Source: Anaeramoeba ignava BMAN (Eukaryota; Protista; Anaeramoebae). Taken from it: a DNA stretch of 64,000 bases. The stretch covers positions 33,859 through 97,858 of the forward strand of contig JAPDFW010000008.1 of the NCBI GenBank assembly GCA_028826165.1, in the 5' to 3' direction. Positions within the stretch are counted from its first letter, which is position 1; the number at the start of each line of letters is the position of its first letter. The notes beneath the pieces were generated by a model. The model was not told the origin of the DNA. It searched no databases and worked only from the letters and a program-made list of their open reading frames with translations. Positions 1-26,600 of the stretch are shown one piece after another. The position numbers and the translations under genes are program-made.

Positions 1-2293
1 GAAAAACAGCACTTCATTTAGCATGTGAAAATGGAAGAATAAGATCTGTTATTGAACTTTCTAAATTATGGAGCAAATATTAATTTAACTTGCAATGTAT
101 ATTATTTATTTTATATTTATTCATTTTAAATTTATTTTATATTTGAAAAAATAATAAACAAAATAAATAGTTTGTATTTAATTATTTATTTAATAATTAA
201 TATCAAAATTAAATTTTAAATTTTAAATAAAAAAAAATAATTAGAATGTATTTTAATTTTTATTAAAATTAAATTAATTTAAATTTAAAATAAAATATTT
301 ATTTATATTTATATTTATATAGGGAGTTTGATTCAATTTAATAAATAAATAAATAAATAAATAAAATAATCCTTATTATTTTCCAAATTATTTTCCAAAT
401 TATTAGAAAGTAAATGAAAAATCCAAAAAATATAAATATAAATAATATAAATATAAATATAAATATAAATAATATAAATATAAATATAAATATAAAAATA
501 TTAGGAATGTGATCCACTTACAATTGCTGAAGAAAAGAAATATTCTGAAGTAGTACATATACTTAAGAAATATATAAATGGAGAAGATTATTCTTACGTT
601 TTAAGTGAATCACAAGATTTTATAGAAATTGAAAAACTATTACAAGAAAGTATCAAGAAAAAAGAAGAAGAAGAAGAAAAAGAAAAAGAAAAAGAAAAAG
701 AATCTCATAAAAAAAAAAGAAAAGCAAAAAGATCCAAAAAAAAACAAATTGAAAATCAAATTGAAATTGAAAATGAAATTGAAAATGAAAATGAAAATCA
801 AATTGAAAATGAAAATGAAAATGAAACAACAGAAAATGAAACAACAGAAAATGAAACAACAGAAACAGAAACAGATATTGAAAATGAAAATGATGATGAT
901 GATGATGATGAAAAACTAATTGATTTAACTTCAGCATTAATATTTAAACCATCATTGATAAAAGAAAATCCAACAAATAATGAAAACATTAATGTAGAAA
1001 TAAGTGAAAAAAAAGAACCAATTAATAATTTATCCGAAAATACAATTTCTGAAAATGGTATTAACTTAAATCTTATTAAGGCAAGAGAAAATTTAAGAAG
1101 TTTTTTAAGTTCAAAAGATCAAAAACTTGCCAAAATTCGAACAATTAAAAAGAATTTTAATGAACAAGGATTGAGTCTTATTGAAAATATTTTAATTCAA
1201 AAAAAGCAAAGTATTGAAAAAGAAAAAGAAAAAGAAAATCAAAATGAAAAAGAAAAATCAAAATCAAAATCAAAATCAAAATCAAAATCAAAATCAAAAT
1301 CAAAATCAAAAACCAGATAATAAATTAACTGATACAGATAAATTCAGAGAACAATTTAGCTTAACATCAAAAGATAGATTATTAGAATTTGATCCAAATT
1401 CATTAACAGATGTACAAAAAATAGGAGAAGGAGCATATGGAACTGTATTTAAAGCAAAAATGGATGAAATTGATGTTGCGATTAAATATTTCAAATTCAA
1501 ATTACAAAAGAAAGAAAGAGAAAGAGCAACATCAGAATTCAAAATTCTCAAATCATTAAATTATCCATTTATTGTTTCTTTTCTTGGATATAGTTTAAAT
1601 CCATATTGTATTATGATGGAATTTTGTGATCAAGGAAGTTTATCAGATTTAATTTATAATAACAAAATCGAATTTACTCAAGAAGAAATGTTTAAAATTT
1701 TCAAAGAAATCACATTTGCATTAATTTATCTTCATTCAAAACAAATTATCCATCGAGATCTTAAAAGTCAAAATATATTAATTGATCAACATGGAAGAGT
1801 AAAATTAGCAGATTTCGGATTAGCAACATTTACAGACTCAGAAAAACAATTATCAGCTGTTGGAACACCTAATTGGACAGCACCAGAAGTTCTTCAACGA
1901 TTAAAATATTCATATTCAGTAGATATTTTTTCAATTGGAATGATTATTTATGAAGTTACTCATAGAATAATTCCATTTGATAAACAAAATATTTTTGAAA
2001 TTATGATGAATATTCAAAATGGAATTAGACCATCTTTAAAAGATGATAATATTTTTAATGATATTATTGTTCAATGTTGGGCTCAAGATCCAAATGAAAG
2101 ACCTACTGCTACAGAATTACTTACAATGTTGAGTGATTTAGAAACACAAACTAAAAATCAAAATCAAAATCAAAATCAAAATTCAAATCAAAATCAAAAT
2201 CAAAATCAAAATCAAAATCAAAATCAAAATCAAAATCAAAATCAAAATCAAAATCAAAATCAAAATCAAAATCAAAATCAAAATCAAAATTAA
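1..2293 (+). CDS. Ankyrin-repeat plus TKL-group protein kinase, 5'-truncated by the window edge. Exons <1-96, 171-173, 245-247, 323-325, 407-409, 505-2293
   Basis: 1-96 reads KTALHLACENGRIRSVIEL/LNYGANINLTCN (one extra T near 58-60), with a GT donor at 97. After the TAG at 502-504 it reads ECDPLTIAEEKKYSEVVHILKKY, then an acidic linker with frameshifts in A-runs and the AATCAA tract. The kinase domain is intact: IGEGAYGTV, VAIK, HRDLKSQN, DFG, GTPNWTAPE. Poly-QN tail. Confidence 0.85.
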
Positions 2294-2440
2294 AATTAAA
2301 ATCAAAATCAAAATCAAAATTAAAATCAAAATCAAAATCAAAATCAAAATCAAAATCAAAATCAAAATTAAAATCAAAATCAAAATCAAAATCAAAATTA
2401 AAATCAAAATCAAAATCAAAATCAAAATCAAAATTAAATT
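2156..2440 (+). repeat. (AATCAA)n hexamer tract running through the kinase stop codon
   Basis: Seen directly. Encodes QN repeats until a CAA>TAA variant at 2291-2293. Confidence 0.95.
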
Positions 2441-2485
2441 CAAAATATTTGTAAAATTTATTTGAAAAGAAAAAAAAAACAATCT

Positions 2486-4307
2486 TCAATTTTTATCAAG
2501 TAAATTAGTTTTAGGATCATCATTTTCATTAATTTCTTCATTTGGATTTTGTAATTGATTTTGAATTTTTGACATTTCTTCTTGAATTTGATTAATTTCG
2601 ATTTGATTTCCACAATAACCTCCATTTAAAAAAAGTTCAGAAACATAAAATAAATCATTATAATTAGCAAAAGATTTTAAATGAATTTTAGAAGGAGGAA
2701 TTTTTGAAAATAATAAATGAATCCAATTTTTACAACAACCTTTTGAAAAAGGATTTTGAATATCTTTATAAATATTTCGATACTTTTTTTTTTGATAAAA
2801 ATTCAAATAAATAAAATGAATAAATAAAATGAATAAAATTAATTTCTTACATATTCTCTTGTTGTTAAATTTTTAGAAACTAAATAACAATGAAAAAAGG
2901 TTAATTTTGATAAATACATTGAAAAAGGAAGAGAATAAATTGTTAATAAATAACTATAGATTTTTTTAAAGAAAAAGAATTTGAATAATTTTTTGATAGT
3001 TTTGATTAAAATTAATAAAAAAAACCTTGCTAATGTTTTCACAAATGCTTCAGAAAATGTTTTTTCTTTCGTAAGAATAATAATATGAAGAATTGAAACA
3101 ACAAAAACAAAAAATATTGAAAGAGTTACAAAAATTAAGAAAAGAAAGAAAAATCTATAATTTCTTATTCCTAAATCACATCCAACCCATCCACCTTTTT
3201 TTTTTAAAAAAAATAACCAAAACATGAAAAGAAAGAAAAAATTTAAAAATCGGATAAAAATTTTTTAAAAATCGGATAAAAATTTTTTTACAATGATGAT
3301 CAAATTTTTGAACACAATTATCACAAATAGAACAATGAGAAGCACGAGGAGATCTATAAATATTGCAAGTATCTAAAAAATAAAAACAAATAAAATATTT
3401 ATATTTTATATTTTGAATTTCTTTTTTTTTTTGAATTTTTACCACAATAAGGTAATTCAAAAGTATTATTTTGAAATTCAAAAGGTTTTGTTTCAGGAAT
3501 ATGTTGAAAAGATCCCTAAAAATATAAAATATTAATATTAAATATTAATATAAAATATTAAATAATAAAATATTAAATATAAATAATAAATATTAAATAT
3601 AAAATAATAAATATTAATATTAAATATTAATATAAATATAAATAATAAATATAAATATAAAATATAAAATATTAAATATAAAATATTAAATATTAAATAT
3701 AAATATTAAATAATAAATATAAATATAAAATATAAATATTAAATATTAAATAATAAATATAAATATTAAATATAAAATATTAAATATAAAATATTAAATA
3801 TAAAAATATTAAATATATAAAAATATAAATATAAATATTAAATATAAATAATAAATATTAAATATTAAATATTAAATATTAAATAATAAATATTAAATAT
3901 TAAATATTAAATATTAAATATTAATATAAAATATTAATATGCACTGAAAAATATGTATCACGAGGAATAATTCCAGGTTCAATAAAAGAAGTTAATAACA
4001 AAGAAAGATTAACAGCAATAAAAAGAAAAAGAGCAACCAAAAAAATAGAAAAATGGATAATTTTAATAGAAGGATAAGCAGTAAAAATAATAAATAAAAT
4101 AAAAGGAATATTAAAGATAAATTCAGTAACAATTAAAGTTTTCCAATCAGGCCCAGTAAATAATTTTCCAGAACAACAAAACCTATTATTTCCTGGCCAA
4201 ACTTGATAAATTTTTAATTTTGAATGAAGAGTATGATTTTGATTTTGATTTTCAATTTGATTTTGATTAACAAATTCAAAATGTGTTTCAACTAAATTAT
4301 TATTCAT
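2486..4307 (-). CDS. DHHC palmitoyltransferase (ERF2/ZDHHC9-like), about 361 aa. Exons 4307-3945, 3515-3443, 3372-3292, 3194-3026, 2953-2851, 2782-2486
   Basis: [23 protein letters not shown]-terminus, [64 protein letters not shown]. All intron phases are consistent. Confidence 0.92.
3516..3944. repeat. A/T-only low-complexity repeat (AAATATT-like) filling DHHC intron 1
   Basis: Seen directly between the GT donor at 3944 and the AG at 3516. Confidence 0.9.
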
Positions 4308-4399
4308 TTAAAAAAAAAGAAAAAAAATGAAAAATAAAATTTTTTTTTGAAATATTTTTTTTCATTTTTTTTCATTTTTCTTACTTTCCAAAATTTTCA

Positions 4400-6802
4400 A
4401 TGAATTTCTTTTTCTTTTTTCTTTTCATTTCTTTATTTTTTTTCTATCAAATTTATACTCAAACTTGTATTTGGAATACAGAAAATCATAGTTATAATTT
4501 AACATCATTAAGAAAATCAAATGGAAATTTTCAATATTATAATTTAAATGATGATATTTTATTTGAATTAAATTTGTGTGGAGGATTAAATACAATTTCT
4601 CAAACTATTTGCCCTTGTTGTACTCTTTATTCTCAATTAACAGGTTATACAATGACCCAAAATTACTCGTGTACAGCTTGGGGTGATTTTGTAAATGGAG
4701 AGAGTTGGGATTATATTGGTATACAAAAATATTAATTTTACATCTTTCTTTCTAAATCCATAATTTTGATAAAAATGTTTTTTTCTTGATTTAAATGAAA
4801 AAAAATTGGATCAATAAAAATTTGATTTCGGATCATAAATTTAAAATTTAATTCAATTCAAAATTAAATTTAAATTTAATTTTAAAATTAAATTCAAAAT
4901 TAAATTCAAAATTAAAATTCAAAATTCAAAAATTAAAATTAAAATTAAAATTAAATTCAAAATTAAATTTAAAATAAAATTCAAAATTAAATTCAAAATA
5001 AAATTCAATTCAAAATTCAAAATTCAAAATTAAATTCAAAATTAAATTTAAAATTAAATTTAAAATTAAATTTAAAATTAAATTCAAAATTAAATTCAAT
5101 ATTAAATTCAAAATTAAATTCAAAAATTCAAAATTAATTAAAAATTAAATTCAAAATTCAAAATTAAATTCAAAATTAAATTTAAAATTAAATTCAAAAT
5201 TAAAATTAAAATTAAATACAAAATTAAATTAAAAATTAAATACAAAATTAAATTCAAAATTAAATTCAAAATTAAATCCAAAATTAAATCCAAAATTAAA
5301 TATAAAATTAAATTCAAAATTAAATTTAAAATTAAATCCAAAATTAAATATAAAATTAAATTCAAAATTCAAAATTAAATTCAAAATTAAATCCAAAATT
5401 AAATTCAAAATTAAATTAAAAATTTAATCAAAAGATGGAGATAATCCTGGAATGGGAATTACCTTAACTTATAAAACACTCACAATTCATGGGCAGATTA
5501 ACAGATCGATGTCTTATAATTTCTTCTGTAATGATGAAGAAGTTTTTCGGTTGATTTCTGCTTTTATTGAAGATACAATACCACCTCAAATACATATTAA
5601 TGTTGCTAGTAAATTTTCTTGTTTGGAACCCACTTCATCTCCTCAACCTTCTCCTACTACTGATCCTGGTCTCTGTAAGACTATTACACAGAATGAATTG
5701 TATGATCTTAGAAAACTTAAGGGTCAATATCTTTATCGTGATTATTGGACTCAAAATTTATATTTTGTTTCAATTTGTGAAAATGTTTTTAATATTTCAA
5801 ATTGTCCTGTAATTTTTCTTTTCAAAATAAATTAAAATTAAAATTAAAATTAAAATCGGATAAAAAATTAAAATTAAAATTAAAATTTAAATTAAAATTA
5901 AAATTAAAATTTAAATCGGATAAAAAATTAAAATTAATATTAAATTTATAATTAAAATTAAAATTAAAATTAAAATTAAAATTAAAATTAAAATTAAAAT
6001 TAAAAATTAAAATTAAAATTAAAATTAAAATTTATTTATAAAATTAAAATTAAAATTAAAATCGGATAAAAAATTTAAATTAAAATTAAAATTAAAATTA
6101 AAAATTAAAATTAAAATTCAAAATTAAAATTCATTTATAAAATTAAAATTAAAATTAAAATTAAAATTAAAATTAAAAAAATTAAAATTAAAATTAAAAT
6201 TTAAATTAAAATTAAAATTAAAATTAAAATTAAAATTAAAATTAAAATTAAAATCGGATAAAAAATTAAAAATATTTTAGTGTTGTGTTGAAAATACAAC
6301 AACTGGATGGCTTTTAAAAAGTGATGGAAATTGTACTAAACTAGGATTATTAAATACATCATTATATACACCACTTCCAGGAAGTGAAACACCAGAAGAT
6401 GGAGTTGGATTAAATTATCAATATATATTAACAAATGGAACAGTAACACATGAACAAAAATATCAATTCATTTGTGATATTGATGCTAATCCAGGATATA
6501 TTTTGAGTATAATTGATTTGGCAATTAATCCTCCATCAACAGAAATCACATTTGTAACTTCTCATTCTTGTCCTTTAGATCCCTTCTCCCCTTTTCCTAC
6601 TCCTTCTCCTTGCCCTAAATGGTCTCCTTGTGCTGAAACTAATTGTCCTACTCCTTCTCTTTTGACTTCTTCTTCTACTACTGGAATGAAAGGTAGTTAT
6701 GTTTTCCTTGTTATTTTAATGGTTGGTTTAATTACTTTTATTGGTGGTTGGTTTTTCCATAAATTTAAATCTGATAAAAATCAAAATTATCAAAATCTTT
6801 AA
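4400..6802 (+). CDS. Type I membrane protein with two MRH-like (mannose-6-phosphate receptor/ATG27) domains, about 404 aa. Exons 4400-4718, 5435-5808, 6281-6802
   Basis: Signal peptide. Repeated C..(x)YNLTSL....F.LNLCG and C..(x)YDLRKL....YFVSICE motifs, each ending SKFSC or TSHSC. Pro/Ser/Thr stalk, TM helix (YVFLVILMVGLITFIGGWFF) and C-terminal YQNL (YxxPhi) sorting motif. Phases are consistent. Confidence 0.75.
4840..5430. repeat. (AAATTCAAAATT)n 12-mer satellite in intron 1 of the MRH gene
   Basis: Seen directly. Confidence 0.9.
5825..6275. repeat. (AAAATT)n satellite in intron 2 of the MRH gene, punctuated four times by ATCGGATAAAAA
   Basis: Seen directly. Confidence 0.9.
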
Positions 6803-7610
6803 AAAACCAAATTATTTTTTTTTTTCATTCCACTTTTTTTTTTTGCTTTTTTTTTCTTTAATAATTAAAAATTTCTTTAAAATTTATTTGAATTTCATTT
6901 AAAAAGTTTTTCCATAAATTTAAATCTTTAAAAAAACAAAATTATTTTTTTCTTTTCATTCCACTTTTTTTTTTACTTTTATTTTATAATTAAAAATTTA
7001 TTTGAATTTCATTTAAAAAGTTTTTCCATAAATTTAAATCTTTAAAAACCAAAAAATATTTTTTTTTCTTTTCATTCCACTTTTTTTACTTTTTTTTTCT
7101 TTAATAATTAAAAATTTCTTTAAAATTTATTTTAATTTTTATTTAAAAAGTTTTTCCATAAATTTAAATCTTTAAAAAAACAAAATTATTTTTTTTTTTC
7201 ATTCCACTTTTTTTTTTACTTTTATTTTATAATTAAAAATTTATTTTAATTTCATTTAAAAAGTTTTTCCATAAATTTAAATCTTTAAAAAACCAAAATT
7301 ATTTTTTTCTTTTCATTCCACTTTTTTTACTTTTTTTTTCTTTAATAATTAAAAATTTCTTTAAAATTTATTTTTATTTTTATTTAAAAAGTTTTTCCAT
7401 AAATTTAAATCTTTAAAAAAACAAAATTTATTTTTTTTTTTTCATTCCACTTTTTTTATTATTTTTATTTTATAATTAAAAATTTATTTTAATTTCATTT
7501 AAAAAGTTTTTCCATAAATTTAAATCTTTAAAAACCAAAATTATTTTTTCTTTTCATTCCACTTTTTTATTATTTTTATTTTATAATTAAAAATTTATTT
7601 TTATTTAAAA
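6751..7610. repeat. About 7-copy tandem array (113-130 bp units, alternating to give a dimer of about 243 bp) of the intergenic region between the convergent MRH and USP-like genes
   Basis: GTTTTTCCATAAATTTAAATCT recurs near 6751, 6907, 7020, 7150, 7263, 7391 and 7506. TTCATTCCACTTTTT occurs in each unit. Confidence 0.92.
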
Positions 7611-10600
7611 ATTAATAATAATTGTAATTTTTCAATTTCATTATTGGAATATATTATTCGAATTTTTGCTAAAATTTTATCTGAACGAAGAAATTCTCTT
7701 GCAAAATGAAGTCTTTGTTGTTGGAATTGATCTTTAATATTAATAATTTCCTCAAGAATTTGAGATGCATAAAGATTTTTATTCATAATAGAATTTGCAC
7801 AAATCATTGAAAAATTTCGAGATGTTGAAAGATCATCTAAACAAATTTTGCAAATTAATTTTGGAAGAAGTTCTGGATTGACTTTAAATTGGATGCTATG
7901 AAGAATAAGTTGATGATATTTAACAGAAATTTCATCAAGAAAATCAGAAAAAACATCCTTTTTGGAAATATTTGAAAGAGTGAAATAAATAATTTCAATT
8001 AATAAAGTGAGGAACTGATAATAACTTGGATTTGGAATATTTGGAAGAGATAAATAGGATCTTGTCAATTCATTGATGACTTGAGTTTGAACAATAAAAT
8101 TTGATTGATTTTCTCCCAATTGAGTAAAATGTGAAATTATCCAAAGATGAATTAAAGGAGGAATAAATCCATGCAAATGAATCAATGAATCCTCACAAAC
8201 AAATTTAACAAATTGAAAAATATCCCGATTTGGCAATTGATTATCTTTAGTTTCATTCAAAAACAACGAAATCAATTCAGCCGCAGATTCATGATGCTTT
8301 GGAATAGTTGTGATTAGCCAGTGTTTTCTTTTCACTTCATTAAGAAACCATAAACAATTCCTCTTTGTTATAAATGGAAACTTTTTCATGAATTGAATAA
8401 CTTGATTTGCTGATACTTGTCGACTTGATGATTGGAAATAAATCTTGAAAACAAGATTCATAAACATTTGGAAATTCCGAAATGCTTTTTCTTCTTTTTC
8501 ACTTATATCTTCAATAGAATCCAAATAGAATTGGTTTTTGTTGATCAAATCAAAAACAAATTTGAAATGCGATGAAGAAAAAAGTGCAGAAATAGATCGT
8601 GGATCCTTGATTGAATATTCATCCTGAATACTTTTTTCACTTTGTATTTTTGCTTGCAATTTTTGCTTTTTATAAATCAATAAAACAGATGTTGTATCCA
8701 AACTAGAAAAAACATTTGGAGAGTTTTGTTTGTTTACAACAAATATCTTTCGATTGGAAAACATATAGAAATTTTGATTTGATTGATCCATTTTTTCAGA
8801 TGGCAGTCTAACTAAAGAAGAGAAAAAATTAACTCGATCCTTGTTTTGATTTTGAAGAATTAATCCATTTAAACCATAAGTTTTTTTTGTTCCGTTTTTA
8901 GTGTTTTCATTTTGAGAAGAAAACTGAGTTAAATCAATAAGTTCTGGAAAATCTATTGTTTCTGGAATTTGTAAATTTGCTTTTCTTTGAATATGAAAAA
9001 TCATCATTTCAGGAAATTTGATGATGATTCTTTGTTTGATTCCTTGGACATTTTTTGAACAAGATGGACAATAAAATTCCTTTTCAATTTTTTTGAAATA
9101 ATGAACCAGAAAATCATCCAAATTATGATAAATTGAAGGATCGATTTGTAAAATGAAGTGATGTTTTTGTCTTGGAAAAAAATGTGTTGAATTTTCTGAG
9201 CATAAAGATTCTGAACTAGTAATCAAAGTGAAGAAATGATTGATAATTGACTGATTTTCAGAATTTAATTTCTCAAAAATGGAGTTGATGATTGAATCAA
9301 GATTGTGTGTTTTAAGTGGAGAGTTTGGAATAAATTGTTGAAACGAAGAAAAGTTGAAGAAAAAAGAAGATAATTTTTGCATGAGAATAAAAACGGCGTT
9401 TAATTTGTGAGAAAGAGATGATTTGTTATCATTTTCAATTTGGATTTCATTTTCAATTTGGATTTCATTATTATTATTATTGTTATTGTTATTGTTGTTA
9501 TTGTTATTTTCATTTTCAAAATATTTTCTTTTATCTGATAAAAATTCATTTGATATGATCAATTTCCGAAATTTTTTGATAAAAAATAATTGCTGAATAA
9601 TAAAATCAATGGGTATATCTTCAGATTTGAATCCTGTTTGGATCGCTATTTCTTGATTTGCAAAATTTTCTTCTTCAAGTGTTGATAAATCCAAAAGTTT
9701 TGAAATTTTATCTTCTGGAATGAATTGAGAAACATTCTTTTCAAAATGGAATAAATTTTGATATTCAATTTGTGTAATTTCAATGAGATTTTCAGGATCA
9801 TTAGCAAGTAAATTCAAAATATGGAAACCAATTTGGATTGAGCGCTTTGTTTTGCACTTTGGCAAATGATTGGAATGAAGAGTATTTTTTGGAACCATTT
9901 TGAAGATACACTGAAAAAAGAGTTCATCAATGAGTCCACATTCTTTGGCAAGATAACGTTCCATTCCTTTAATTTGTTGCATCATAAGAAATAGGGAATT
10001 GAGAAGAAGCTCAAAACTTTTGCCTCCATCTTGCAATGCTGGATCATGTGATTTGATGAAATTTGTGTAAAAACGGAAATAATTCAAAATTTTTTCTTTG
10101 TCAAGAATCGGTTTCCATTGCTTCTCTTTCTTTTGCAAAATTTTGTGGAAAAATTGCAAGAAAACTTCATAACAATGAATATTTTTGTTGAGAAAGGGAA
10201 AAAATCCATATAATAAGGCAGCAAGATATTCTCTTGAATTAGAAATTGATTTGAAAAGAATTGAATTATCATTCTCGAGAATTTCTGAATTGCTATTTTG
10301 TATGACAACAAACAATTCCAAAGGGAAATGGGTTGAATGGAATATTTTCAGAATAAAATGGATGCATGTTTTTTGGTATTCTAGGATTTTGTTCGTGATA
10401 AGAAAAGAAAAGATCCACAAATGGAAAGATTTTGGCAAACAAGAGAGAGTAAAAGTTTCAATGTTATCAAATATCAAATTGAGAAGAGTGAAAGATTCAT
10501 CAATAATAGCCTTGAAATTTTCTTCGATTTTCTGCTCAATTTTCAAATATCTGTTGAGAATCTCAATCAAAATATGCAAAAGATTGAATAGTGACGCGAT

Positions 10601-13600
10601 AAATGAGCTTAAATATCCTTGTTTTGTTAAAAGTTGCTGTTGGAAATTCATAAAAAGAAGAGGATTGATTGTTGTTGGTGAATTAGGGATTCCAAACGGA
10701 ATTTGGAGGATTTGCGACAAGGAAAAATGGATAGGATTCAATAAATGGAGATTATCGAGTTCAATCAAATATGATTCAATTTCTTGGTTTGTTTTCTTGA
10801 GAATAAATGTGTTTTTTCCTGGGAAATCACATTGTATTTGCTGCGGAGTTTGGGGATCATATTCCTTCTGCAATTCTGCAAATAGAGGAATTTCCAATTT
10901 TGTCTTGATATAATAAACAACAACATCCATCAAATGCCGAATTCCTTGGGATTCAATAAATTGATTGCACCATTCCACATTTTTTATGCTTGAAATGTGC
11001 GTGAATTGAATAGGGAATTTCTCTTGATATTTTTCAAACGAAATGAACTTCAAATGATCAATTATCTGAAGTCCATATAGTAATTCCTGTTCTTTTTGTT
11101 TAGGTAAAAGAGAATCCCAATCATCAAGATTCATATTTTTGGGAAAATTGAGAAATTTCTGAAGAAAATTGTGACTTGTTGGGAGTTGTTGAATTAAATA
11201 CCAAGATGGCTTTATAAAAGATGGATCTAGTTCAATTAATTTCCAAAAAAACGAGAAATAGTTCATAAAAATATCTTCTAGTGAAAAAGGTGATGACTTT
11301 TTTGTTGTTGTTGTTTTTTTTTTAACAAAAGAAAATGATGAAAAAAAATTAGAATTGAATATTTAATGAAATGAATTGAATATTATTTAAGGAAATGAAT
11401 ATAATATTTAATGAAATGAATTGAATATTTAAGGAAATGAATTGAATATTTAAGGAAATTAATTGAATATTTAATGAAATGAATTGAATAATATTTAATG
11501 AAATGAATATAATATTTAAGGAAATGAATTGAATATTTAATGAATTGAATATATTATTTAATGAAATGAATTGAATATTTAATGAAATGAATTGAATATT
11601 TAATGAAATGAATTAAATATTTAAGGAAATGAATTGAATATTTAATGAATTGAATAATATTTAAGGAATTGAATATTATTTAAGGAAATGAATATAATAT
11701 TTAATGAAATGAATAGAATATTTAAGGAAATGAATTGAATATTTAATGAAATGAATTGAATATTTAAGGAATTGAATATTATTTAATGAATTGAATATTT
11801 AATGAATTGAATAATATTTAAGGAATTGAATAATATTTAAGGAAATGAATTGAATATTTAAGGAAATGAATTGAATATTTAATGAATTGAATTGAATTGA
11901 ATATTTAATGAAATGAATATAATATTTAAGGAAATGAAATGAATATTTAATGAATTGAATTGAATATTTAATGAAATGAATTAAATATTTAAGGAAATTA
12001 ATTGAATAATATTTAAGGAAATTAATTGAATAATATTTAATGAAATGAATATTATTTAATGAAATGAATTAAATATTTAAGGAAATGAATAGAATATTAT
12101 TTAAGGAAATGAATTGAATATTATTTAATGAATTGAATATTATTTAAGGAATTGAATATTTAAGGAAATGAAAAGAAACAAACTTGAGAAAATGATTGAT
12201 TGGAAATTTCTGGATGTAAATTGTCTTCAATAAGAACAATATCACCAATAGAATCAACTGTAGGAAACAAACCTAGTTTTTTAAGATTCACATCAACAAA
12301 TCCATTAAATTTTGATTCAATCAAAATGACAAATTGCTTCAGCAATACATTTGAAGGAATATAGACCTTCGTTTTGTAAAATTTCCCATCGTTAGGGTTT
12401 GTAAACGAGATCACTTTGGATATTTCTCGAGTATTTGAGTTGAGATAGTGAGGAAATTGTGTCAATTTGTTAACGTTTTTGTGCTGATAAGTTTGAAGTA
12501 TGTTTGACAAAATGGAAAATATTTTAGACACTTTTTTTTGGGAATCTTCAAGTGATTCTTGCCCAAATTTCTTGATAACATGATTTAACTTTTTGATTTC
12601 TCTCTTGATTAATTTGGATAATATTTTGGGGATTTGGAAATAATCCATTAAATATCGAATGGAATTTCTCTCAACTTTTGGATCATCGCATTCCGAAATT
12701 ATTAAAAATAAAAGATTGATTTGATTTTCCAGCGAGTTTTGGTTTGGAATGCGAGACAACTTGATAAAATGATCCCATTCATCGATTGTGATTGTTTTGA
12801 AATTGAAATTCTGAATGACAAAGTCCAACAAATTCTGGTTTTCAAACTGATCCATTTTGATATCATATTGCGCATTGATTTGCTCATGTTTCATAAAAAA
12901 CTCCAAAAAAAGTGTTCTTTCCCGCAAGTTTTGAGGATGGAAAATAAACTCCTCTATCAATTTTGTCAAGATGGAGTTGCTAATTTTGAGCGCAAATTTC
13001 TCATTCAAAAAACTGAGAAAAGATTGTAAATGAGAAATTGGATCAGAATTTGTGTTTTGATTTTCGGGTTGTTTGCGTAAATTGAGCTGGTAAAAAATCT
13101 CTTGAAGAACTAATTCCATCAAATTTTGTGCAAACAATCGCAGTTGCTTTGAAGGAGTTCCTGGGAAGTTGTTTTGGATATCAAGTTTGATAATTTCAAA
13201 TGATGATTTTAAATTTTGGTGAAATTTGATATTTTCCTTCATTTGGTTCTCATATAATTGTCTCGACATAAAGGGAATCAGCGTCAAGAAATATTCCATG
13301 ATTTGCTTCTGCAGATCTTCCGAGACTTGTGAGTCTTCTGAAATACGGTTCCATATCACTGGAATTCCAATGAAATCATAAACTTTTTTTTCAATTTTTG
13401 CGGATTGGAATTTTTTCTGATCAAGCAACTTCAGTATTTCAAGATGTATTGCTGAAAAAACCCGATCTTCCACACTTTTTAATCTCTCGCATATTAACTG
13501 TAGATTTCCGTCAGTGCCATAACTGGAAATTGTTTGAAACAGAGGTAGAAAAATTTCTAACGGAAATGATGGATCGGGATTTTGCAAAAATTTTGAGCAT

Positions 13601-16600
13601 AAAATGTCAATTACAACAGAATTAATCTTATTGCTACGCTTTGCAAATTTCTCCAAAATATAATTTGCTTGCAAGAATATTTGCGCGAGATCTTCCGAGT
13701 TGTCTTGGATTGTTGGAGGCTGAATGCTTGATAAAAAATATCCAAAATAATTTTCAACAGTTATACAAATTAAGTTGAAATTTTTGTGTGAAATTTTGCT
13801 TTCATATTTCGCAATTCGATCAATAAAGTTATTCATCACATAAAGACCAAGTGTTTTTTCAATTTGAACTGTTTGTTCACTGAAGATTTTTCCGATGAAG
13901 TTGTTGTAAAATTTGTCGATTTTTTGGAACGTGAAATGAATTGAAAATAAATTGTTTGAAATGATTTCAAGATTATCAACAATTTTATCAATTGAGTCAA
14001 TGATTTCAATCGAAATGCTTTTTTGAATAGAAAGAGAAAAAAGGGTTAAAATTGAAAATGCGTTTTGAATTGCATTTTTTAATATTTCTTGATTTTTAAA
14101 GAAAATGGAGCACTTTTAATTTGAATTTTTTCAGAATTAATTTTAATTTTGATTTTGATTTTAAATTTGATTTTAATTTTAAATTTTATACAAATTTAAT
14201 AATGTTTGAAAACGATAGAAGAGAATTTAAAGAAAAATCTTTTTTCACTAAAAAAGAAGATTCAAGAATTTGGATTCCTTGTTTTTCTTCAATAAATTCC
14301 ATAATTTTTTCTGCAAAACAAAAGGATTTAGTATCATTTTTCTATAAGAAATTAAAGAGAGAAGAAAAAATCACAATTTTTTTTTGTTTAAATGAAATTT
14401 TTTTAAAAAACGAACAGAAAATTTTCTATTTCCAGTTAATTTAACAAAATTATTTGAAATTGTTTTTAAATTTTGATTCAATTTTCCTTGTGAATTGATC
14501 ACTTTTTCTAATACTTTATCAAGTAGAGAAATGAAAAGAGTTTGATTTTCTGAAGTTTTTAATAAACATAATAAAACTATCATCTTCAAAATTTCCAAAA
14601 TTAATTTTGGAGAAGTTTCTCTTTAAAAATGTTTTTTTTAAATAAAAATTAATATTTTTTGTTTTGAATTTAAAAAAAAAGAAATGAAAGAAACTTGATA
14701 TAAAGTTGCTCCATTTTACGAATTTGAGAAGAAATTTCATTTATAAGTTCAAATTGAAGTAAATTTATAAATTCTTCTTCTTGTGATTTTTCAAGTCTTT
14801 TTTGATTAATTGCTTGAAGAATTTCGAGAATAATTTCGAAAGCTTGTGAAGGATTTTCTAAATTTTTCAATATTTAATATTTTAATATTTTTAATGAATT
14901 TTTAAATTTTTCAATTTTGGAATTTGTAAATAAATTTATAAATAAAGTTATAAATAAATTTGTAAATAGATTTGTAAATAGATTTGTAAATAATTTTTGA
15001 AATGAATTTGTAAATAAATTTGTAAATAAAGTTGTAAATAAATTTTAAATTTAAATAAATTTTAATAAATTTGTAAATAAATTTATAAATAAATTTGTAA
15101 ATAAATTTATAAATAAATTTGTAAATAAATTTGTAAATAAATTTATAAATAAATTTGTAAATAAATTTATAAATAAAGTTGTAAATAAATTTATAAATAA
15201 ATTTGTAAATAAATTTATAAATAAGTTGTAAATAAAATAAACAAATTTATAAATAAATTTATGTAAATAAAATTTGTAAATAAATTTATAAATAAATTAA
15301 AATAAAAAAATTTATAAATAAATTTGTAAATAAAAATTTGTAAATAAAATAAATTTACATAAATAAATAAATTTGTAAATAAATTTGTAAAAATAAATTT
15401 ATAAATAAATTTTTTATAAATAAATTTTAAATAAATTTGTAAATAAATTAAAAAATAAAATAAATTTATAAATAAATTTGTAAAATAAATTTATAAATAA
15501 ATTTATAAAATAAACAAGTAAATAAATTTATAAATAAATTTGTAAATAAATTTTAATTTATAAACAAATTTTGTCAAGTTTTTTGTAAAAATTTGTAAAA
15601 ATAAATTTATAAATAAATTTATAAACAAATTTGTAAATAAATTTATAAAATAAATTTATTTGTAAATAAATTTAAATAAATAAATTTAAATAAATAAAAT
15701 AAATTTGTAAATAAATTTATAAATAAAATTTGCTTAAAATAAATTTGTAAATAAATTTATAAATAAATTTGTAAATAAATTTATAAATAAATTTGTAACA
15801 AAATTTGTATAAATTTTAAATAAAATAAATAAATTTATAAAAAAATTATAAATAATTTGTAAAAATAAATTTTAAATAAATAAATAAATTTGTAAATAAA
15901 TTTATAAAAATAAATTTGTAAATAAATAAATAAATTTATAAATAAATAAATTTATAAATAAAGTTGTAAATAAAATAAATGTAAATAAATTTAAAACAAT
16001 AAATAAATAAATAAATTTAAATAAATAAATTTTAAATAAATAAAAAATTTGTAAATTATAAATAAATTGTAAATAAATAAATTTAAATAAATTTGTAAAA
16101 TAAAATAAATTTGTAAATGTAAATTTGTAAATAAATTTTTCAATAAATAAATTTGTAAATAATAAAGTAATGAAAAATTTGTAAATAAATAAATAAATAA
16201 AAATTTATAAATAAATTTTAAAAATAAATAAATTTATAAATAATTTTGTAAAACAATAAATAAATAAATTTGTAACAATTTGTAAATAAATTTATAAATA
16301 AATTTGTAAATAAATTTATAAATAAATTTAAATAAAATAAATTTATAAAAATAAGAAATAAATTTGTAAATAAATTGTAAAACAAATTTATAAATAAATT
16401 TGTAAAAAAATTTATAAATAAATTTATAAATAAAATTTATAAATAAATTTGTAAATAAATTTATAAATAAATTTAAAAATAAAATTTATAAATAAAGTTG
16501 TAAATAAATTTATAAATAAATTTAAAAATAATAAATAAAGTTGTAAATAAATTTGTAAATAAATTTATAAATAAATTTTTACTGAAAAGTGTTGTAAATT

Positions 16601-16723
16601 TATAAATAAATTTTGAGGTATTCAATTTCTTTTTGAAAATGGTGTTGTTAATAAATGGGAATAATTTTTAAAATCAAGAAATTGATTTTTTTTATTAGAT
16701 TGAAAAAAATTTGAAAAATTCAT
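7601..16723 (-). CDS. Large USP9X/USP24/USP34-like protein with a degenerate catalytic domain (over 2000 aa). Last two exons 14112-12184 and 11296-7601, three short exons in 14190-14860, tentative first exon 16723-16583
   Basis: SWYLIQQLPTS, WCNQFIESQGIRHL, LPKCKTKRSIQIGFHILNLL, IIQQLFFIKKFRKLII, FYCPSCSKNVQGIKQRIIIKFPEMMIFHIQR, FPELIDLTQF and YGLNGLI parallel the USP9X/24 layout. GT-AG joins are phase-consistent for exons 2-6. Exon 1 is inferred from an Inr-like motif, ATG at 16723 and GTAAAA donor at 16582, but needs frameshift correction. Confidence 0.75.
11345..12165. repeat. About 21-bp minisatellite (GAAATGAATTGAATATTTAAT variants) filling the last USP-like intron (11297-12183)
   Basis: Seen directly. 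Confidence 0.92.
14920..16580. repeat. (TAAATTTGTAAA/TAAATTTATAAA)n 12-mer satellite, probably intron 1 of the USP-like gene
   Basis: Seen directly. Flanked on the minus strand by GTAAAA (16582) and TTTAG (about 14858). The middle is irregular, suggesting poor consensus. Confidence 0.85.
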
Positions 16724-16788
16724 TTAAATTTTTTTTTGAAATGAGAAAAATGAAAAAATTAAAAAATCATTTTTTTTCTTTTTAAAAA

Positions 16789-18614
16789 ATGAATGATTGT
16801 TTATTTTTTGGTCAAAATCAATATCCAAAACTTATCAAAAATGAACCAAATAAAATAGCAAAACCAATTCAATTTAAATTTGAAAATGAAAATGAAAATG
16901 AAAATGAAAAACAAATTAAACAAATTTCATCAGCAAATTTTTCAACAATTTTCCTTTTTAAAAATGGAAAAGCAATAGAATATTTAAATGATAAAGATTC
17001 AAAACAAAAATCCTGAAAAATTCAAATTGAAGAAAATATTCAAAAAGTAACTGTTGGTTATCATAATGAAGCTATTTTAACAATAGAAGGAAATGTATTT
17101 TTGCAATTTTCCTTTTGAAAATGGGAGAATATAAAGATTCAAAACAAAAATATATTAACAAAAAATACAAAAGAATTTATCAATATTTCATCATTAATTG
17201 AAGATCCAAATGATAGAATAATTGAAGATATTGTTTCTGGTTACAGTTCAATTTACTTATTAACTTCAAATCAAAATGTTTATGGAATTGGTTCAAATCA
17301 ATATTGTCAACTTGGTTTTGATTTTAAAACACTTTATGAAACAGAAAAACCAATTTTAATGATGAAAAATGTTTCTAAAATATTTTCAGGAAATACATCA
17401 GATTGCATTTTTCTTTTAAATTCAAATCAAGAATTATTTGGATGCGGATATAATTATTCTGGTCAACTTGGATTAGGAGAATCAAGAAAAGAAGAAACAG
17501 AAATCCAAAAATTAACCAAAATCCAAAATATTCCAAAAGGCAAAATAATTGATATTCAATATGGAATTTCTTTTTCAATAATGTTGATTGAAAATCAAAA
17601 CGAAAACCCAAAAAGAAAACTTTATTCATGTGGATATTATGGATATAATGGACTTGGCAAAATACTTGAAAATACTTATGAATTTACTGAAATCAAATCA
17701 TCTTTATTTGAAGATAATGATGATAATATTCTTGATTTTTCTGTTGGACATTCTCATACTTTGATTTTAACTTCTAAAGGGAAAGTAATTGGATTTGGAG
17801 ATAATTATTATGGTCAATTAGGAACTGAAGATACAAATAATCAATCAATTCCAATTCAAATTGAACTTCCTAAATTAAGATTTAATGAAAATATTTCTAA
17901 TTATCATGTTCTTTGTGGATCTTTAAAATCATTCCTTTATTCTTCTCCTTCTTTTTCCAATCTTGAAGAAGATTTGATAAAATTATTTAGAAGAAAAGAA
18001 TTTTGTGATATTTCATTTAAAACAGAAAATGGAGAAATAATTGAAGCTCATAAATTAATATTGAAATATAGATTAAATCAAAATCAAAATCAAAATCAAA
18101 ATGAAAAACTTCAAGAAATTATTTCAAAAAAATCAATTAAAGAATCAAATCAAATATTTGAAATGATTTATTCAAACAAAATTATAAATCCAAAATTATA
18201 TTCTGAAATTAAAGAAATTATAAATTTAAATGAAAAAATTGAAGAAACAATGAAAAGAATTTATTTAAATGAAAATGAAAAAGATTTTATTATTGAAAGA
18301 AAAGAAAAACAGTATAAATTTCCCAAAATTAATATTAATAATGAGAAGTGAATTATATCGAGGAATGTTTTTATCTGTAACTGAAGACAAATCTAAATAA
18401 AGTTACAGATTATAGTGAATTAAGTAATGAATCATTTCAAATATTTGAATATTGGATTTATTCAAATCAAATTAAAAATGAAATTGAAATTACACAAGAA
18501 ATAATTGAAGAAATTAAAATTGGAATTGATTATTTTCAATTAAATCAAACAAATCCAAATTTATTTGATTTATTAATTAATAAATTTAATAACCAAAATC
18601 AAAATCAAAATTAA
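16789..18614 (+). CDS. RCC1-repeat plus tandem BTB protein, copy A. Frameshifted (pseudogene or consensus errors)
   Basis: Collinear with copy B: GSNQYCQLG, GCGYNYSGQLG, GFGDNYYGQLG, EFCDISFKTENGEIIEAHKLIL, MRSELYRGMF. Frame breaks near 17010, 17100-17160, 18325 and 18395. Confidence 0.75.
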
Positions 18615-18734
18615 AATCAAAATCAAAATCAAAATCAAAATCAAAATTAAAATCAAAATCAAAATCAAAATCAAAATCAAAATCAAAATTAAAATAAAAA
18701 TTAAAATTTTTTTTTCATTTTTTTCTTTTTAAAA

Positions 18735-20721
18735 ATGAATGAAATTTTATTTTTTGGTCAAAATGAATATCCAAAACTTATCAAAAATAAATCAAAAGGA
18801 ATAACAAAACCAATTCAATTTAAATTTGAAAATGAAAATGAAAATGAAAATGAAAATGAAAAAGAAAAAGAAAAATGAAAATGAAAATGAAAATGAAAAA
18901 CAAATTAAACAAATTTCATCAGGAAACTTTTCAACAATTTTCCTTTTTAAAAATGGAAAAGCAATAGAATATTTAAGAGATTCAAATCAAAATCCTGAAA
19001 AAATTCAAATTGAAAATATTCAAAAAGTGTCTGTTGGTCATGAAAATGAAGCTATTTTAACATTAGAAGGAAATGTATTTGCAAAAGGAAAATATATTAA
19101 TTCAAAAAATCCAAAAGAATTTATTAATATTTCATCATTAATTGAAGATACAAATGATAGAGTAATTGAAGATATTGTTTCTGGTTACAGTTCAATTTAC
19201 TTATTAACTTCAAATCAAAATGTTTATGGAATTGGTTCAAATGGTTGGGGTCAACTTGGTTTGCATTATGAAACACTTCAAAGAACAGAAAAACCAATTT
19301 TAATGATGAAAAATATTTCTAAAATATTTTCAGGAAATACATCAGATTGCATTTTTCTTTTAAATTCAAATCAAGAATTATTTGGATGCGGATATAATTA
19401 TCATGGTCAACTTGGATTAAAAGAAGCAATACTACAGGCAAAAGTCTATAAATTAACTCAATTCCAAAATATTCCAAAAGGCAAAATAATTGATATTAAA
19501 GGTGGATTTAATCATTCAATAATGTTAATTGAAGATGAAGATGAAAATGAAAATGAAAATGAAAATCCAAAAAGAAGACTTTATTCAACTGGAGATTATA
19601 AATCTAATGCACTTGGCAAGGCTCAAGATACAAAAATATTTACTGAAATCAAATCACCTTTATTTGAAAATGATGAAGATAATATTCTTAAAATTTCTTG
19701 TGGACAATATCATAATTTGATTTTAACAACAAATGGGAAATTGATAGTATTTGGAAATAATGAATTTGGTCAATTAGGAACTGGAGATATAAACCATCAA
19801 CCAACTCCAATTCAAATTGAACTTCCTAAATTAAGATTTAATGAAAATATTTCCAATTATCATGTTTCTTGTGGAAATAATAAATCATTTCTTTATTATT
19901 CTCCTCATTCTTTTTCCAATCTTGAAGAAGATTTTATAAAATTATTTGAAAGAAAAGAATTTTGTGATATTTCATTTAAAACAGAAAATGGAGAAATAAT
20001 TGAAGCTCATAAATTAATATTGAAATATAGATTAAATCAAAATCAAAATCAAATTGAAAAACTTCAAGAAATTATTTCAAAAAAATCAATTAAAGAATCA
20101 AATCAAATATTTGAAATGATTTATTCAAACAGAATTATAAATCCAATATTATATTCAGAAATTAAAGAAATTATAAATTCAAATGAAAAAATAGAAGAAA
20201 CAATGAAAAGAATTTATTTAAATGAAAATGAAAATGAAAATGAAAAAGATTTTATAATTGAAAGAGAAGAAAAACAATATAAATTTCCAAAATTAATATT
20301 AATAATGAGAAGTGAATTATATCGAGGAATGTTTTTATCTGTAACAGAAGACAAATCTAATAAAGTTACAGATTATAGTGAATTAAGTAATGAATCATTT
20401 CAAATATTTGAATATTGGATTTATTCAAATCAAATTAAAGATGAAATTGAAATTACACAAGAAATAATTGAAGAAATTCAAATTGGAATTGATTATTTTC
20501 AATTAAATCAAACATATCCAAATTTATTTGATTTATTAATTAATAAATTTAATAATCAAAATCAAAATCAAAATCAAAATCAAAATCAAAATCAAAATCA
20601 AAATCAAAATCAAAATCAAAATCAAAATCAAAATCAAAATCAAAATCAAAATCAAATTCAAATTCAAATTCAAAATCAAAATCAAAAAAAGAATAAAGAA
20701 AAAAATTGTTTAATTTTTTAA
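18735..20721 (+). CDS. RCC1-repeat plus tandem BTB protein, copy B, with a poly-QN spacer and C-terminal CaaX (CLIF)
   Basis: Likely ATG at 18735 (MNEILFFGQNEYPKLIK, matching copy A), with one frameshift in the GAAAAT/GAAAAA tract near 18870. RCC1 GxNxxGQLG repeats, two BTB domains, ending KKNKEKNCLIF. Confidence 0.88.
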
Positions 20722-20740
20722 GAAATCAAATAAAAGAAAC

Positions 20741-23700
20741 TCAAAAACAAGAACACCCTTTAGATTTTTCATCTTTTCTTTGTGGTTTTTGAGTATTTAA
20801 TTGCTTTTTTTGTTTTGATTTTTTTTCTTGAATTAAATTTGGAGATTCTGAAACTTGAAAAAATTCCATTGCTTCTTCAATTTCTTGTAATAAATTCTTT
20901 GGAATATTATGAACATCCAATTCATTACAATAAAGAAATTTCAAAAAAATTTCCATTGATTTAATACTCAGCATTGATAAATCAGTCACTTGATTTGATT
21001 CATCTTGAACACTAACAAACATTCCTCTAAAAAATCCACTTCTTGCTGCCAAAACTTCTTTATGAGCTAAAAAACTTTTTTCTGTTCCTTTTGATTCATC
21101 TTTTTTGATAATCTTGAAATTTTTGCTTTCGTTTTGTGAATATAAATCCAAAAAACTTTTCTGCAATCCAACCAAATTAGATTTTGATTCAATTTCTTTT
21201 GCACTCATTCCAATTTCTTCTCCAATTTTAAATATTAAATTTTGTGAGTTTGGAAATTCTGCAAAATTTAAATTTCCACTATAAATCCACTTAAGAAATA
21301 TTTCCAGTTCTTTTTTCTCTTTTTTGATACTTATTAGTTTTAAATTTTCCAGATTTTTCCCAATTCTGTTTTCTAAAATGAGTTTATGAGAACAAACTTT
21401 TCCTTCTCTCGTTTCAAAATCAAAATCACACAACTCTTGTCTATCAAAAAATTGTAAATAATCTTGAACTAATGTGAAAAATAAAAGAATTTGAATTTCA
21501 GGATCATCAGTTAATTGAAAAGCTTGAAGATTCTTTTGATTTCCATTTTGATTTAAACAAAAAAAAAAGACAAAAAGTAAAATTTAAATTTGTAAAAAAA
21601 TTATTTTTGAAAGTTTTCAATTTTTTGATTTTACTTCCTATTTAATCCAAAATAAATCATTACTAAATATTCTTTTCTTTTCTTCTTCTTTTCATAACTC
21701 AAAAAAAATTACTTCCTAAATTGAAAAATATTATATTTTCATATTAAAATAAAAATTTAAATAATTAATTAGTTTTTTTTTTTGATTTAAACATTAGGAA
21801 TTGTTGGATCTGCTCCAGCTAAAATAAAAGATGATATAATTTGAATTTTATTTTCCTTTGGCATTTCTGTCATACAAGTAAAATGAAGTTGTGTTGATTT
21901 CTTTGATATAAATATTAATATTATTTATTTTGATGAATTAATTTTTTTTGTTGTTCTTCTTGCGAATTTTTTTGAAAAAGAAAATATTCTAAATGGATTA
22001 CAAACTAATCAAGAAGATTTATTTAGATTAAATTTTTATTTTTGGTTCTTGAAGAAAAATTACAAGATTAGTTTTGTTGACATCATAACCGTTTTTAATA
22101 TATTCTGAAATTTTTTCAACAGATTTTTCTTTGACATACAAACACATTGTGTTCCAATTCTAGTTTTAATTCAATTTTTTAAATTTAATTCAATTTTTTA
22201 GTTTTAATTCCAATTTTTTTTTGAATTAACATTATAAATTAATTTTCTTGCAAAATTTTGCATCATTGTTTTCAAATTATCCATTTCTTTTATTGATGTT
22301 TCTTCAAACATCATTGAGTATTCTTTTGCAAAAGCAAATCCTTCTTTTTTTGTAACTTCTCGATTTTCTTCAAAATCTAAAATTATTTTTTTTTTGGATC
22401 AAAAAATAAAATTCCATTTCTTTTTCTTATCTAAAAATAAAAATAAAAACCAAGTTTATTTCCAATAAGAAGAAATTCAGGTGAAAAATCTTCAGAAAAA
22501 GTTGATTTAAGTTCAGTAATCCATTTTCGAAGATTTTCAAATGTTTGTTTTTTTGTAATGTCATAAACTAATACTATTGCTTTTGATCCTCTATAATACA
22601 TTGGACTAACAAAAATTTTATAAAGAAAAAATAAAAAGCAAAATTTTTTGAATAAATTTTTGAGATTTGTTTTTAAAAAAAGAAATTAAATCACGCCAAA
22701 ACTCGATATCTTTCAACTCCAGCCTAAAAAGAAATAATCAATAAATTTAATTTGATTTAATTTAATTTAATTTGATTTAATTTAATTTGATTTAATTTAA
22801 TTTAATTTGATTTAATTTGATTTGGATTTGATTTAATTTAATTTAATTTAATTTGATTTAATTTGATTTAATTTAATTTAATTTGATTTTAATTTAATTT
22901 AATTTAATTTAATTTAATTTAATTTAATTTAATTTGGATTTGATTTAATTTAATTTGGATTTAATTTGATTTGATTTGATTTGATTTAATTTTAAATTTT
23001 GATTTAATTTAATTTGATTTAATTTAATTTAATTTAATTTGATTTTAATTTTAATTTGGATTTAATTTAATTTAATTTAATTTAATTTAATTTAATTTAA
23101 TTTAATTTAATTTGATTTAATTTTTTTTGAAATTTGATTTAATTTCCAATTTAATTTAAATTTTGGAAAAATTTAAACCTTTTTAATTTGATTTAATTTA
23201 ATTTAAGTTTAATTTAATTTAAATTTGGAAAAATTTTAATTTATTTTTTGAATTTAAAATTTTGGAATTCTGGATTTGATTTTGGATTTGATTTGATTAA
23301 ATTTGATTTAATTTAATTTATTTTGATTTAATTTAATTTAATTTGGATTTGAATTAAATTTTAATTTGGATTTAATTTAATTTGATTTAATTTAATTTAA
23401 TTTAATTTGGATTTAATTTAATTTGATTTGATTTGATTTGATTTGATTTGATTTGATTTGGATTTAATTTGGATTTAATTTGGATTTAATTTGGATTTAA
23501 TTTGGATTTAATTTGATTTGATTTGATTTAATTTAATTTAATTTGATTTGATTTAATTTGGATTTGACTTGATTTAATTTGAATTTTTTTTTGATAATAA
23601 AATACAGTATCCCACAACTCAAGTTTAACTTGTATTTGATCAATTTCATATGTTTTTGTTAAAAAAGATGCGCCAATAGTTGATTGAGTATCTAATTTTA

Positions 23701-26491: not shown

Positions 26492-26499
26492 TTAAAAAA

Positions 26500-26545: not shown

Positions 26546-26600
26546 TTTGAATTTTAATTTTTATTTTTATTGAATTTATTTTGAATTTGAATTTTGATTA

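Follow-up and report, generated by a model that had tools for sequence, protein, structure and literature searches.

Candidate three-nucleotide exons at the ankyrin hairpins of Anaeramoeba ignava and their probable origin by duplication of an intron and one codon

Can a spliceosomal exon consist of a single codon, and can such exons recur at one structural position of a repeat protein? The question is raised by a stretch of 64,000 nucleotides from the genome of Anaeramoeba ignava BMAN (hereafter the window), in which an earlier note had described seven TAG-flanked micro-exons of 3 nt, all in phase 0 and all at the hairpin of ankyrin repeats. The seven TAG-NNN-GT units were located as described, on both strands, in an ankyrin-kinase gene (gene 1) and an ankyrin-BTB gene (gene 2; Table 1). 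Each of them is in phase 0, after a G-x-D/N-x-N motif and before an x-x-T-P-L-H-like motif. In AT-rich context, TAG-N3-GT occurs 8 times in the window, the eighth match falling within an ORF, and every other spacing from 0 to 10 occurs 0-3 times. A sense-strand scan of the introns of the non-ankyrin genes found no 3-nt unit, and the note had likewise seen none in the non-ankyrin introns that it read. An AAG unit match at -35432 was discounted, as it lies ~40 nt beyond a stop codon.

Table 1 Features of the two unit-bearing genes and of the intronless control gene (window coordinates)
Feature	Position	Strand	Remarks
Gene 1, 12th large exon	1..96	+	One ankyrin repeat; starts at window position 0
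Gene 1, intron	97..170	+	74 nt, GT..TAG, no internal AG
Gene 1, 3-nt exon candidate	171..173	+	TTT (Phe), phase 0
Gene 1, intron	174..244	+	71 nt, no internal AG
Gene 1, 3-nt exon candidate	245..247	+	AAT (Asn)
Gene 1, intron	248..322	+	75 nt, no internal AG
Gene 1, 3-nt exon candidate	323..325	+	GGA (Gly), donor GTTTGA
Gene 1, intron	326..406	+	81 nt, no internal AG
Gene 1, 3-nt exon candidate	407..409	+	AAA (Lys)
Gene 1, intron	410..504	+	95 nt
Gene 1, last exon	505..2293	+	Terminal ankyrin-like helices, acidic linker, then protein kinase domain
Gene 2, exon A	22064..22153	-	Terminates G-Y-D-V-N-K-T-N-L; 5' start uncertain
Gene 2, intron	22005..22063	-	59 nt
Gene 2, 3-nt exon candidate	22002..22004	-	TTT (Phe)
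Gene 2, intron	21901..22001	-	101 nt, AAG acceptor
Gene 2, exon B	21793..21900	-	108 nt, one ankyrin-like repeat; terminates G-A-D-P-T-I-P-N
Gene 2, intron	21716..21792	-	77 nt
Gene 2, 3-nt exon candidate	21713..21715	-	GAA (Glu)
Gene 2, intron	21638..21712	-	75 nt
Gene 2, 3-nt exon candidate	21635..21637	-	GAA (Glu)
Gene 2, intron	21533..21634	-	102 nt, AAG acceptor; outer sites match NCBI model
Gene 2, last exon	20741..21532	-	BTB domain, E 1e-14
Intronless ankyrin-BTB gene (internal control)	39319..42201	+	960 aa, no 3-nt units

Gene 1 extends upstream of the window, where it has eleven further large exons and eleven 3-nt units (C10:30610-33857). All 12 of its inter-repeat gaps contain an N3 unit (chance expectation: 0.29 gaps), none contains a unit at any other spacing from 0 to 12, and 11 of the 12 hold a single unit, the remaining one holding four. 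In 15/15 cases, no AG lies between the upstream donor and the AG of the unit. The 96-nt exons span positions 2-33 of the Pfam Ank profile, and the 3-nt unit would therefore supply position 1, that is, one of the 33 residues of each repeat. In Pfam searches run exon by exon, 8 of the 9 scanned 96-nt exons matched Ank, and all of these matches began at profile position 2 or 3, none at position 1; one hairpin, whose exon matches from position 3, is one residue short despite its unit. The 12th large exon measures 97 nt and not 96; a surplus base near 55-61 is probably a homopolymer error of the assembly. Beyond a low-complexity repeat near 1250-1320, the kinase domain (Pfam Pkinase, E 5.7e-62) is read in a different frame, which probably reflects an assembly frameshift.

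The two ankyrin exons of gene 2, each searched singly, had no Pfam match, and their ankyrin identity comes from motif reading. The canonical register of the second hairpin requires both Glu units. The note had expected such exons to be missed by annotation, and indeed the NCBI model of gene 2 (KAJ5080553.1) omits both GAA units, while the repeats of the public model P0195 are 31-32 residues long. The skipping of both units in the NCBI model of gene 2 is an observation that runs counter to default inclusion. The RNA used for the NCBI annotation was mapped with HISAT2, an aligner that would be expected to miss 3-nt exons. A large ankyrin family of this genome is intronless.

The excess of N3 over the neighbouring spacings is strong genome-wide. 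The searches, which gave counts and no loci, returned 738 matches for N3 against 53 for N2, 101 for N4, 125 for N5 and 144 for N6. The excess was judged against these spacings; the control with reversed patterns, which gave 302 matches for N3 and as many as 3332 for N5, was inflated by a simple repeat and hence was not used. The concentration at ankyrin hairpins is strong as well: 57 units precede, with one intron between, an ankyrin exon with the G-x-T-P-L-H motif, whereas five spacings other than 3 together yielded 5 true cases, four of them of 6 nt. At least 37 of the 78 intron-preceded ankyrin hairpins have a 3-nt unit, and the number of units per hairpin is 1, 2 or 4. The 32 sub-introns range from 58 to 387 nt with a median of 75, and the published introns of the genome have a modal size of 76, a minimum of 35 and a GC content of 8%; they are short enough for the intron definition that the note had thought necessary. 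Other elements of the initial description hold in the window and fail genome-wide. The acceptor is AAG in 15 of the 57 ankyrin-linked units, the units are probably not always in phase 0, and they are not confined to ankyrins, since chains of them occur in the tail of a BTB gene on contig C1 and, in other eukaryotes, in genes for kinases and coiled-coil proteins.

One possibility is that the units are absent from mature mRNA and correspond to re-splicing or decoy sites within ordinary introns, or to an artefact of AT-rich minisatellites. RNA support was not found, the public models omit the units, and the C1 chain is a tandem repeat adjoining a long trinucleotide run. Among the EukProt A. ignava proteins, no transcript-derived protein was found for gene 1 or gene 2 (the one that was found, P0218, is the product of an intronless gene), and none of the 11 sequencing runs at share 0.05 is recorded as RNA. 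In the transcript search with the kinase exon of gene 1, the length window was widened via a homologous kinase piece and the blank result is no proof. Yet, this possibility seems very improbable. Stop triplets account for 6 of the 738 N3 matches when ~75 would be expected, and G+C is present at 35/106 of positions 1-2 of the units against 1/53 of position 3 (p 1.5e-6). Moreover, the 33-residue ankyrin period is completed exactly, and two chains, of 56 and of 96 units, are open in a single phase: neither has a stop in phase 0, while phase 1 contains 7 in the first and 13 in the second. The units have an AG before them, a GT after them, spliceable introns and a coding signature made up of an open frame, motif completion and stop avoidance, as spliceosomal microexons do. 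A. ignava BMAN appears, from its sequence, to hold ~600 three-letter exons, many of which would encode one residue at the binding tip of an ankyrin repeat, and some of which stand in chains that would encode protein codon by codon.

The units are probably genuine one-codon spliceosomal exons, included by default, that arose by duplication of an intron plus 3 nt and were propagated along with the repeat. Each unit lies between two ordinary GT-AG introns whose size is modal for the genome, and the 96-nt exons on either side lack one ankyrin position. Splicing would proceed by intron definition with choice of the first AG, the two flanking introns being removed successively; since they would be removed one by one, the 3-nt exon itself would need no recognition. 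The origin of the units may be a tandem duplication of an intron and its adjacent 3 nt, the smallest intron-containing duplication that would preserve the frame whatever the phase. A single event of this kind at an ankyrin hairpin, accompanied by the loss of a neighbouring codon, would have created a 96+3-nt module, which repeat and gene duplication would then have carried to ~40 loci or more. Where the unit was duplicated again, hairpins would have come to hold 2-4 units, and in non-ankyrin sequence chains of tens would have formed, lengthening protein tails codon by codon. A search for an orthologue in A. flamelloides reached a sole locus, L037, whose orthology is not clear; a hairpin there is interrupted by one phase-0 intron, and the locus needs no unit.

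The C1 chain has 32 units and would encode only the tail of its BTB gene. Its spacers are 85% identical (63% when shuffled), while its triplets, which are preferred codons, are 37% identical; among 16 neighbouring spacers with at least 85% identity, only 2 have the same triplet. That these spacers are alike and yet their triplets differ is counter-evidence to plain duplication. Alternatively, intron copies could insert, in an introner-like manner or by reverse splicing, at a distance of exactly 3 nt from an intron already present and so divide older coding sequence into codons, the ankyrin hairpin being a true hotspot, as the note had also envisaged. The likeness of the C1 spacers beside their dissimilar triplets and the recurrence of the intron ends on contigs C57 and C87 would agree with such insertions, as would the fact that the ankyrin units complete the repeat and do not lengthen it. 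Nevertheless, this alternative is quite improbable: the sub-introns of gene 1 do not resemble each other more than shuffled sequences do (61% vs 57% identity), neither terminal inverted repeats nor target duplications are clear by eye in the C1 chain, the C1 pattern is equally explained by homogenisation of the spacers by conversion, and we know of no mechanism that would fix a 3-nt offset. A hotspot is also less parsimonious than a single 96+3-nt module multiplied as repeats and genes were duplicated. At another locus, L060, neighbouring spacers that are near-identical share their codon in 5/5 cases, a pattern in which recent duplication of units is visible. NTN arrays were also observed at C1:1058-1072 kb and on C21, C24 and C35. 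Outside A. ignava, chains of 8-100 such units occur on metagenome contigs that come from a Mucoromycota-like fungus and, probably, from rumen ciliates.

The hairpins with several units raise the further possibility that units are skipped or alternatively chosen, which would give variable binding loops from one gene. The units are frame-neutral, hairpins differ in their number, and the encoded residue, just before the conserved hairpin Gly, occupies a position that is randomised in designed ankyrin libraries. The last hairpin of gene 1 has the canonical length with one of its four units and not with four. However, all four together may form a two-residue Asn-Gly turn with the two Cys facing each other, the second hairpin of gene 2 needs both of its units, and in the 11 single-unit gaps of gene 1 the sole alternative would be a deletion in a conserved hairpin. 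The spacers between tandem units (71-81 nt) are of normal intron size, and nothing steric or structural in them would keep neighbouring units from being included together; a special RNA fold was rejected, 9 of the 10 folded spacers being no better than shuffles. We consider such diversification unlikely.

No published description of this pattern was found in literature searches, but several known systems resemble it in part. The exons of schistosome micro-exon genes (MEGs), mostly 6-36 nt long, make up most of a secreted protein and are alternatively spliced. Like the A. ignava chains, they form runs of symmetric micro-exons whose skipping would cause no frameshift; the A. ignava units are of 3 nt and belong to intracellular kinase or BTB proteins whose coding sequence is not mostly micro-exons, and the N-terminus of gene 1 is, by eye, a charged segment that does not look like a secretion signal. 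Dscam has clusters of mutually exclusive exons and introners are near-identical introns. Duplicated units clustered at a binding loop recall the former, although no exclusion mechanism was found, and the near-identical C1 introns recall the latter, although the introns of the window are mutually dissimilar. ANK1 and ANK2 encode one ankyrin repeat per exon. The same is true of ANKRD2 (PMC7286341), and these genes share with A. ignava the introns between repeats; in A. ignava, the hairpin residue of each repeat is set apart by a pair of introns with 3 nt between them. Single 3-nt microexons exist in cytohesin-1, where one frame-neutral residue is reported to alter binding specificity (PMC6314551), in RPS24 (10.1101/2024.12.24.630263) and in Drosophila homothorax (micro-Ex8; PMC7392893). 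They too are frame-neutral and encode one residue, but they are single, alternatively spliced exons, in contrast to ~600 candidates with one per repeat and chains of tens. Plant microexons measure 1-15 nt, with a peak at 9 nt and about half of them multiples of 3 (PMC8831610). Both these and a Fusarium 1-nt exon (PMC12940212) are, as described there, missed both by annotation and by aligners and needed for the right protein; a strict 3-nt peak or a codon-by-codon chain is a feature of A. ignava that does not appear in the accessible portions of these descriptions.

In a broader reading, units of an intron and one codon would be a general route to proteins built one exon per codon, taken by several unrelated microbial eukaryotes rich in AT, and the multi-unit hairpins of A. 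ignava would be spliced combinatorially as a natural ankyrin library. Taken as a whole this is unlikely, but its one-exon-per-codon part has good sequence support. If RNA confirms the units, exon-intron structures would reach the physical limit of one codon per exon, ~600 times in one genome and in chains of up to ~100 in other eukaryotes. Whether intron definition alone demands any exon length, in which order adjacent introns are removed, and whether duplication of intron plus codon truly gives rise to introns and to new protein sequence would become testable questions. In that case, the public A. ignava ankyrin models would lack one binding-surface residue per repeat, and chain-encoded tails would be hidden from gene finders in genomes like those of rumen ciliates. 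Were tandem units alternatively used, they would represent a new device of receptor diversification in a symbiont-bearing protist.

All seven TAG-NNN-GT units that the earlier note had described in the window were recovered, four in the ankyrin-kinase gene (gene 1) and three in the ankyrin-BTB gene (gene 2), and every one of them is in phase 0 and occupies the hairpin between successive ankyrin repeats. The ankyrin identity of gene 2 is based on motifs; its exons gave no Pfam match when searched singly. Gene 1, followed into the upstream DNA (L006), has a first exon of 90 nt, then ten of 96 nt and one of 97 nt, the last being a probable assembly error. AG-NNN-GT is found in all 12 inter-repeat gaps (0.29 gaps expected by chance), against none for the other spacings from 0 to 12 nt; eleven gaps hold one unit and the last holds four. 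The Pfam Ank profile matched 8 of the 9 gene 1 exons scanned; the matches begin at position 2 or 3 of the profile but never at 1, so that the unit would provide the residue missing before the hairpin Gly; in the one exon that starts at position 3, the hairpin is still one residue short with its unit. No AG occurs within the intron upstream of any of the 15 units, and the internal AGs of the downstream introns lie at most 51 nt from the donor, the shortest sub-intron observed being 58 nt. This layout recurs in a third ankyrin gene (L035). Two apparent frameshifts of gene 1, seemingly of one base each (window 55-61 and ~1250-1320, in homopolymer or repeat tracts), are probably assembly errors.

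The NCBI models lack the units, as the earlier note had anticipated (gene 2 is KAJ5080553.1). This is expected because RNA mapping was HISAT2-based, and the omission is no proof of inclusion. Another A. ignava model, P0195 (1040 aa), has ankyrin periods of 31-32 residues, which fits units skipped by annotation. The 32,108 introns of A. ignava BMAN have a modal length of 76, a minimum of 35 and a GC content of 8% (PMC11550330, Table S1).

The assembly was scanned in full (42,843,398 bases, 147 contigs). TAG-Nk-GT with AT-rich flanks occurs 738 times for k=3, far more than for k=2 (53), 4 (101), 5 (125) or 6 (144), a surplus of ~630 that is a lower bound because AAG acceptors and flanks containing G or C were left out. 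Only 6 of the 738 triplets are stops, against ~75 expected; units were translated by script solely for stop and phase counts. By hand count, 37 of the 78 intron-preceded ankyrin G-x-T-P/A-L-H exons have a unit 59-89 nt upstream. Since that range covers just 7 of the 12 comparable gene 1 introns, most ankyrin hairpins that have introns probably carry one. The 57 ankyrin-linked units, on 34 contigs, include no stop, and spacings 4-8 combined gave five true ankyrin-linked cases, four of them of 6 nt. Candidate two-codon exons of 6 nt occupy the same hairpin position at G000:C46:70310, C71:1030341, C82:713587 and C92:140933.

The generalizations of the earlier note hold for the window but only in part beyond it. 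TAG flanks all seven window units, but AAG is the acceptor at two other gene 1 units and at 15 of the 57 ankyrin-linked ones. The restriction to ankyrin genes is true of the window, where introns of non-ankyrin genes yielded no candidate, but fails genome-wide with the chain in a BTB-BACK tail on C1. At least 40 ankyrin-BTB genes form an intronless family (window 39319-42201 is a member), so the units characterise a subset of ankyrin genes. Phase 0 is probably not general either: in the four other A. ignava arrays the middle base is T and TGA occurs among the triplets, and their units are probably in phase 1. The window also contains a very long intron-poor gene (7601-14100, minus strand) that an intron and frameshifts seem to divide into pieces, with ORFs of 559 and 1221 aa. 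Genes that combine RCC1-like repeats with BTB stand in tandem pairs at 16789-20721 (+), where the first copy has stops and frameshifts, and at 24860-28229 (-). A ~120-nt repeat is present in about five copies past a gene's stop codon (6800-7600).

Coordinates of single-codon units and chains
Feature	Location	Strand	Remark
Gene 1 units	window 171, 245, 323, 407	+	TAG-NNN-GT
Gene 2 units	window 22004, 21715, 21637	-	TAG-NNN-GT
32-unit chain	G000:C1:409313-413124 (loci L007-L034)	-	3' tail of BTB-BACK gene
Further arrays	G000:C1:1058409-1072341, C21:67779-71271, C24:122015-122359, C35:350929-359733		common intron ends
~100 consecutive units	L060:700-3838, contig JAEEGL011207684.1	-	27-nt spacers; reads as coiled-coil
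56 units	L129:1438-3193, contig Ga0256407_10060259		after kinase-B-box exon
Chains of 8-24 units	L084, L139, L051, L081, L048, L076, L054		spacers mostly 25-28 nt
Chains of 8-24 units	L069, L059, L107, L042, L041, L047, L077		spacers mostly 25-28 nt
17 phase-1 units	L092:90-1631, contig WNFZ01093845.1		GTAAG donors, ~91-nt spacers; upstream of kinase exon

The 32 units of the C1 chain are spaced by ~73 nt and include no stop, and the G+C content of their triplets falls from 0.47 to 0.31 and 0.00 at codon positions 1, 2 and 3. Spacer identity is 85% against 37% for the triplets, and just 2 of 16 near-identical neighbours share a codon. To account for this mismatch, codons would have to be replaced fast, spacers converted or intron copies inserted.

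Chains also occur in other eukaryotes. A single metagenome scan for three tandem units returned 120 contigs, mostly plain repeats; ~15, with 12-22% GC, carry chains of 8 to ~100 units with 25-28-nt spacers and, having been picked by the pattern, attest occurrence, not frequency. The longest (L060, probably from a rumen ciliate) has 102 triplet spacings against at most one for each other spacing, and 96 of its units are free of stops when read in phase 0, while the remaining phases have 13 and 11. All five near-identical neighbouring units there share their codon, which indicates recent unit copies. The units of L129 are rich in Trp and Cys, so that this chain may encode a domain that folds; GA donors seem to be in use at a few neighbouring units. 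Several other chains are open in phase 1 or 2 only. Telomere-like CCCCAAT repeats at the ends of L054 and L107, together with the tiny introns, presumably point to rumen ciliates as the source of such contigs. The kinase exon downstream of the L092 units, a chain with which L055 and L093 were grouped, has its nearest Atlas clusters mostly in Mucoromycota.

Lone 3-nt and 1-nt exons are already known, and schistosomes have runs of micro-exons that are symmetric but larger than the 3-nt units of A. ignava. The literature searched contained no report of family-wide single-codon exons or codon-by-codon chains, and micro-exons go unmentioned in the Anaeramoeba genome papers that were searched. The exons are very probably real, an extreme variant of micro-exon gene structure. 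Their ends are canonical and the adjoining introns of normal size; in gene 1 the acceptor of each unit is the first AG after the upstream donor, and the triplets bear a coding signature and complete the repeat. Introns would be recognized by intron definition and the flanking ones removed stepwise, the unit being included by default. Alternative splicing of multi-unit hairpins, which would diversify the ankyrin loops, seems unlikely. One unit is enough to bring the last hairpin of gene 1 to canonical length, but all four together would give an Asn-Gly turn with paired Cys; the second hairpin of gene 2 requires both of its units, and no obstacle to the joint inclusion of tandem units was found. 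As for the origin of the default-included units, duplication of an intron with three adjacent bases would keep the frame in any phase, which would explain a unit size of 3 regardless of phase. In the ankyrins, a single 96+3 module may have spread via repeat and gene duplication, a simpler explanation of their units than repeated insertion.
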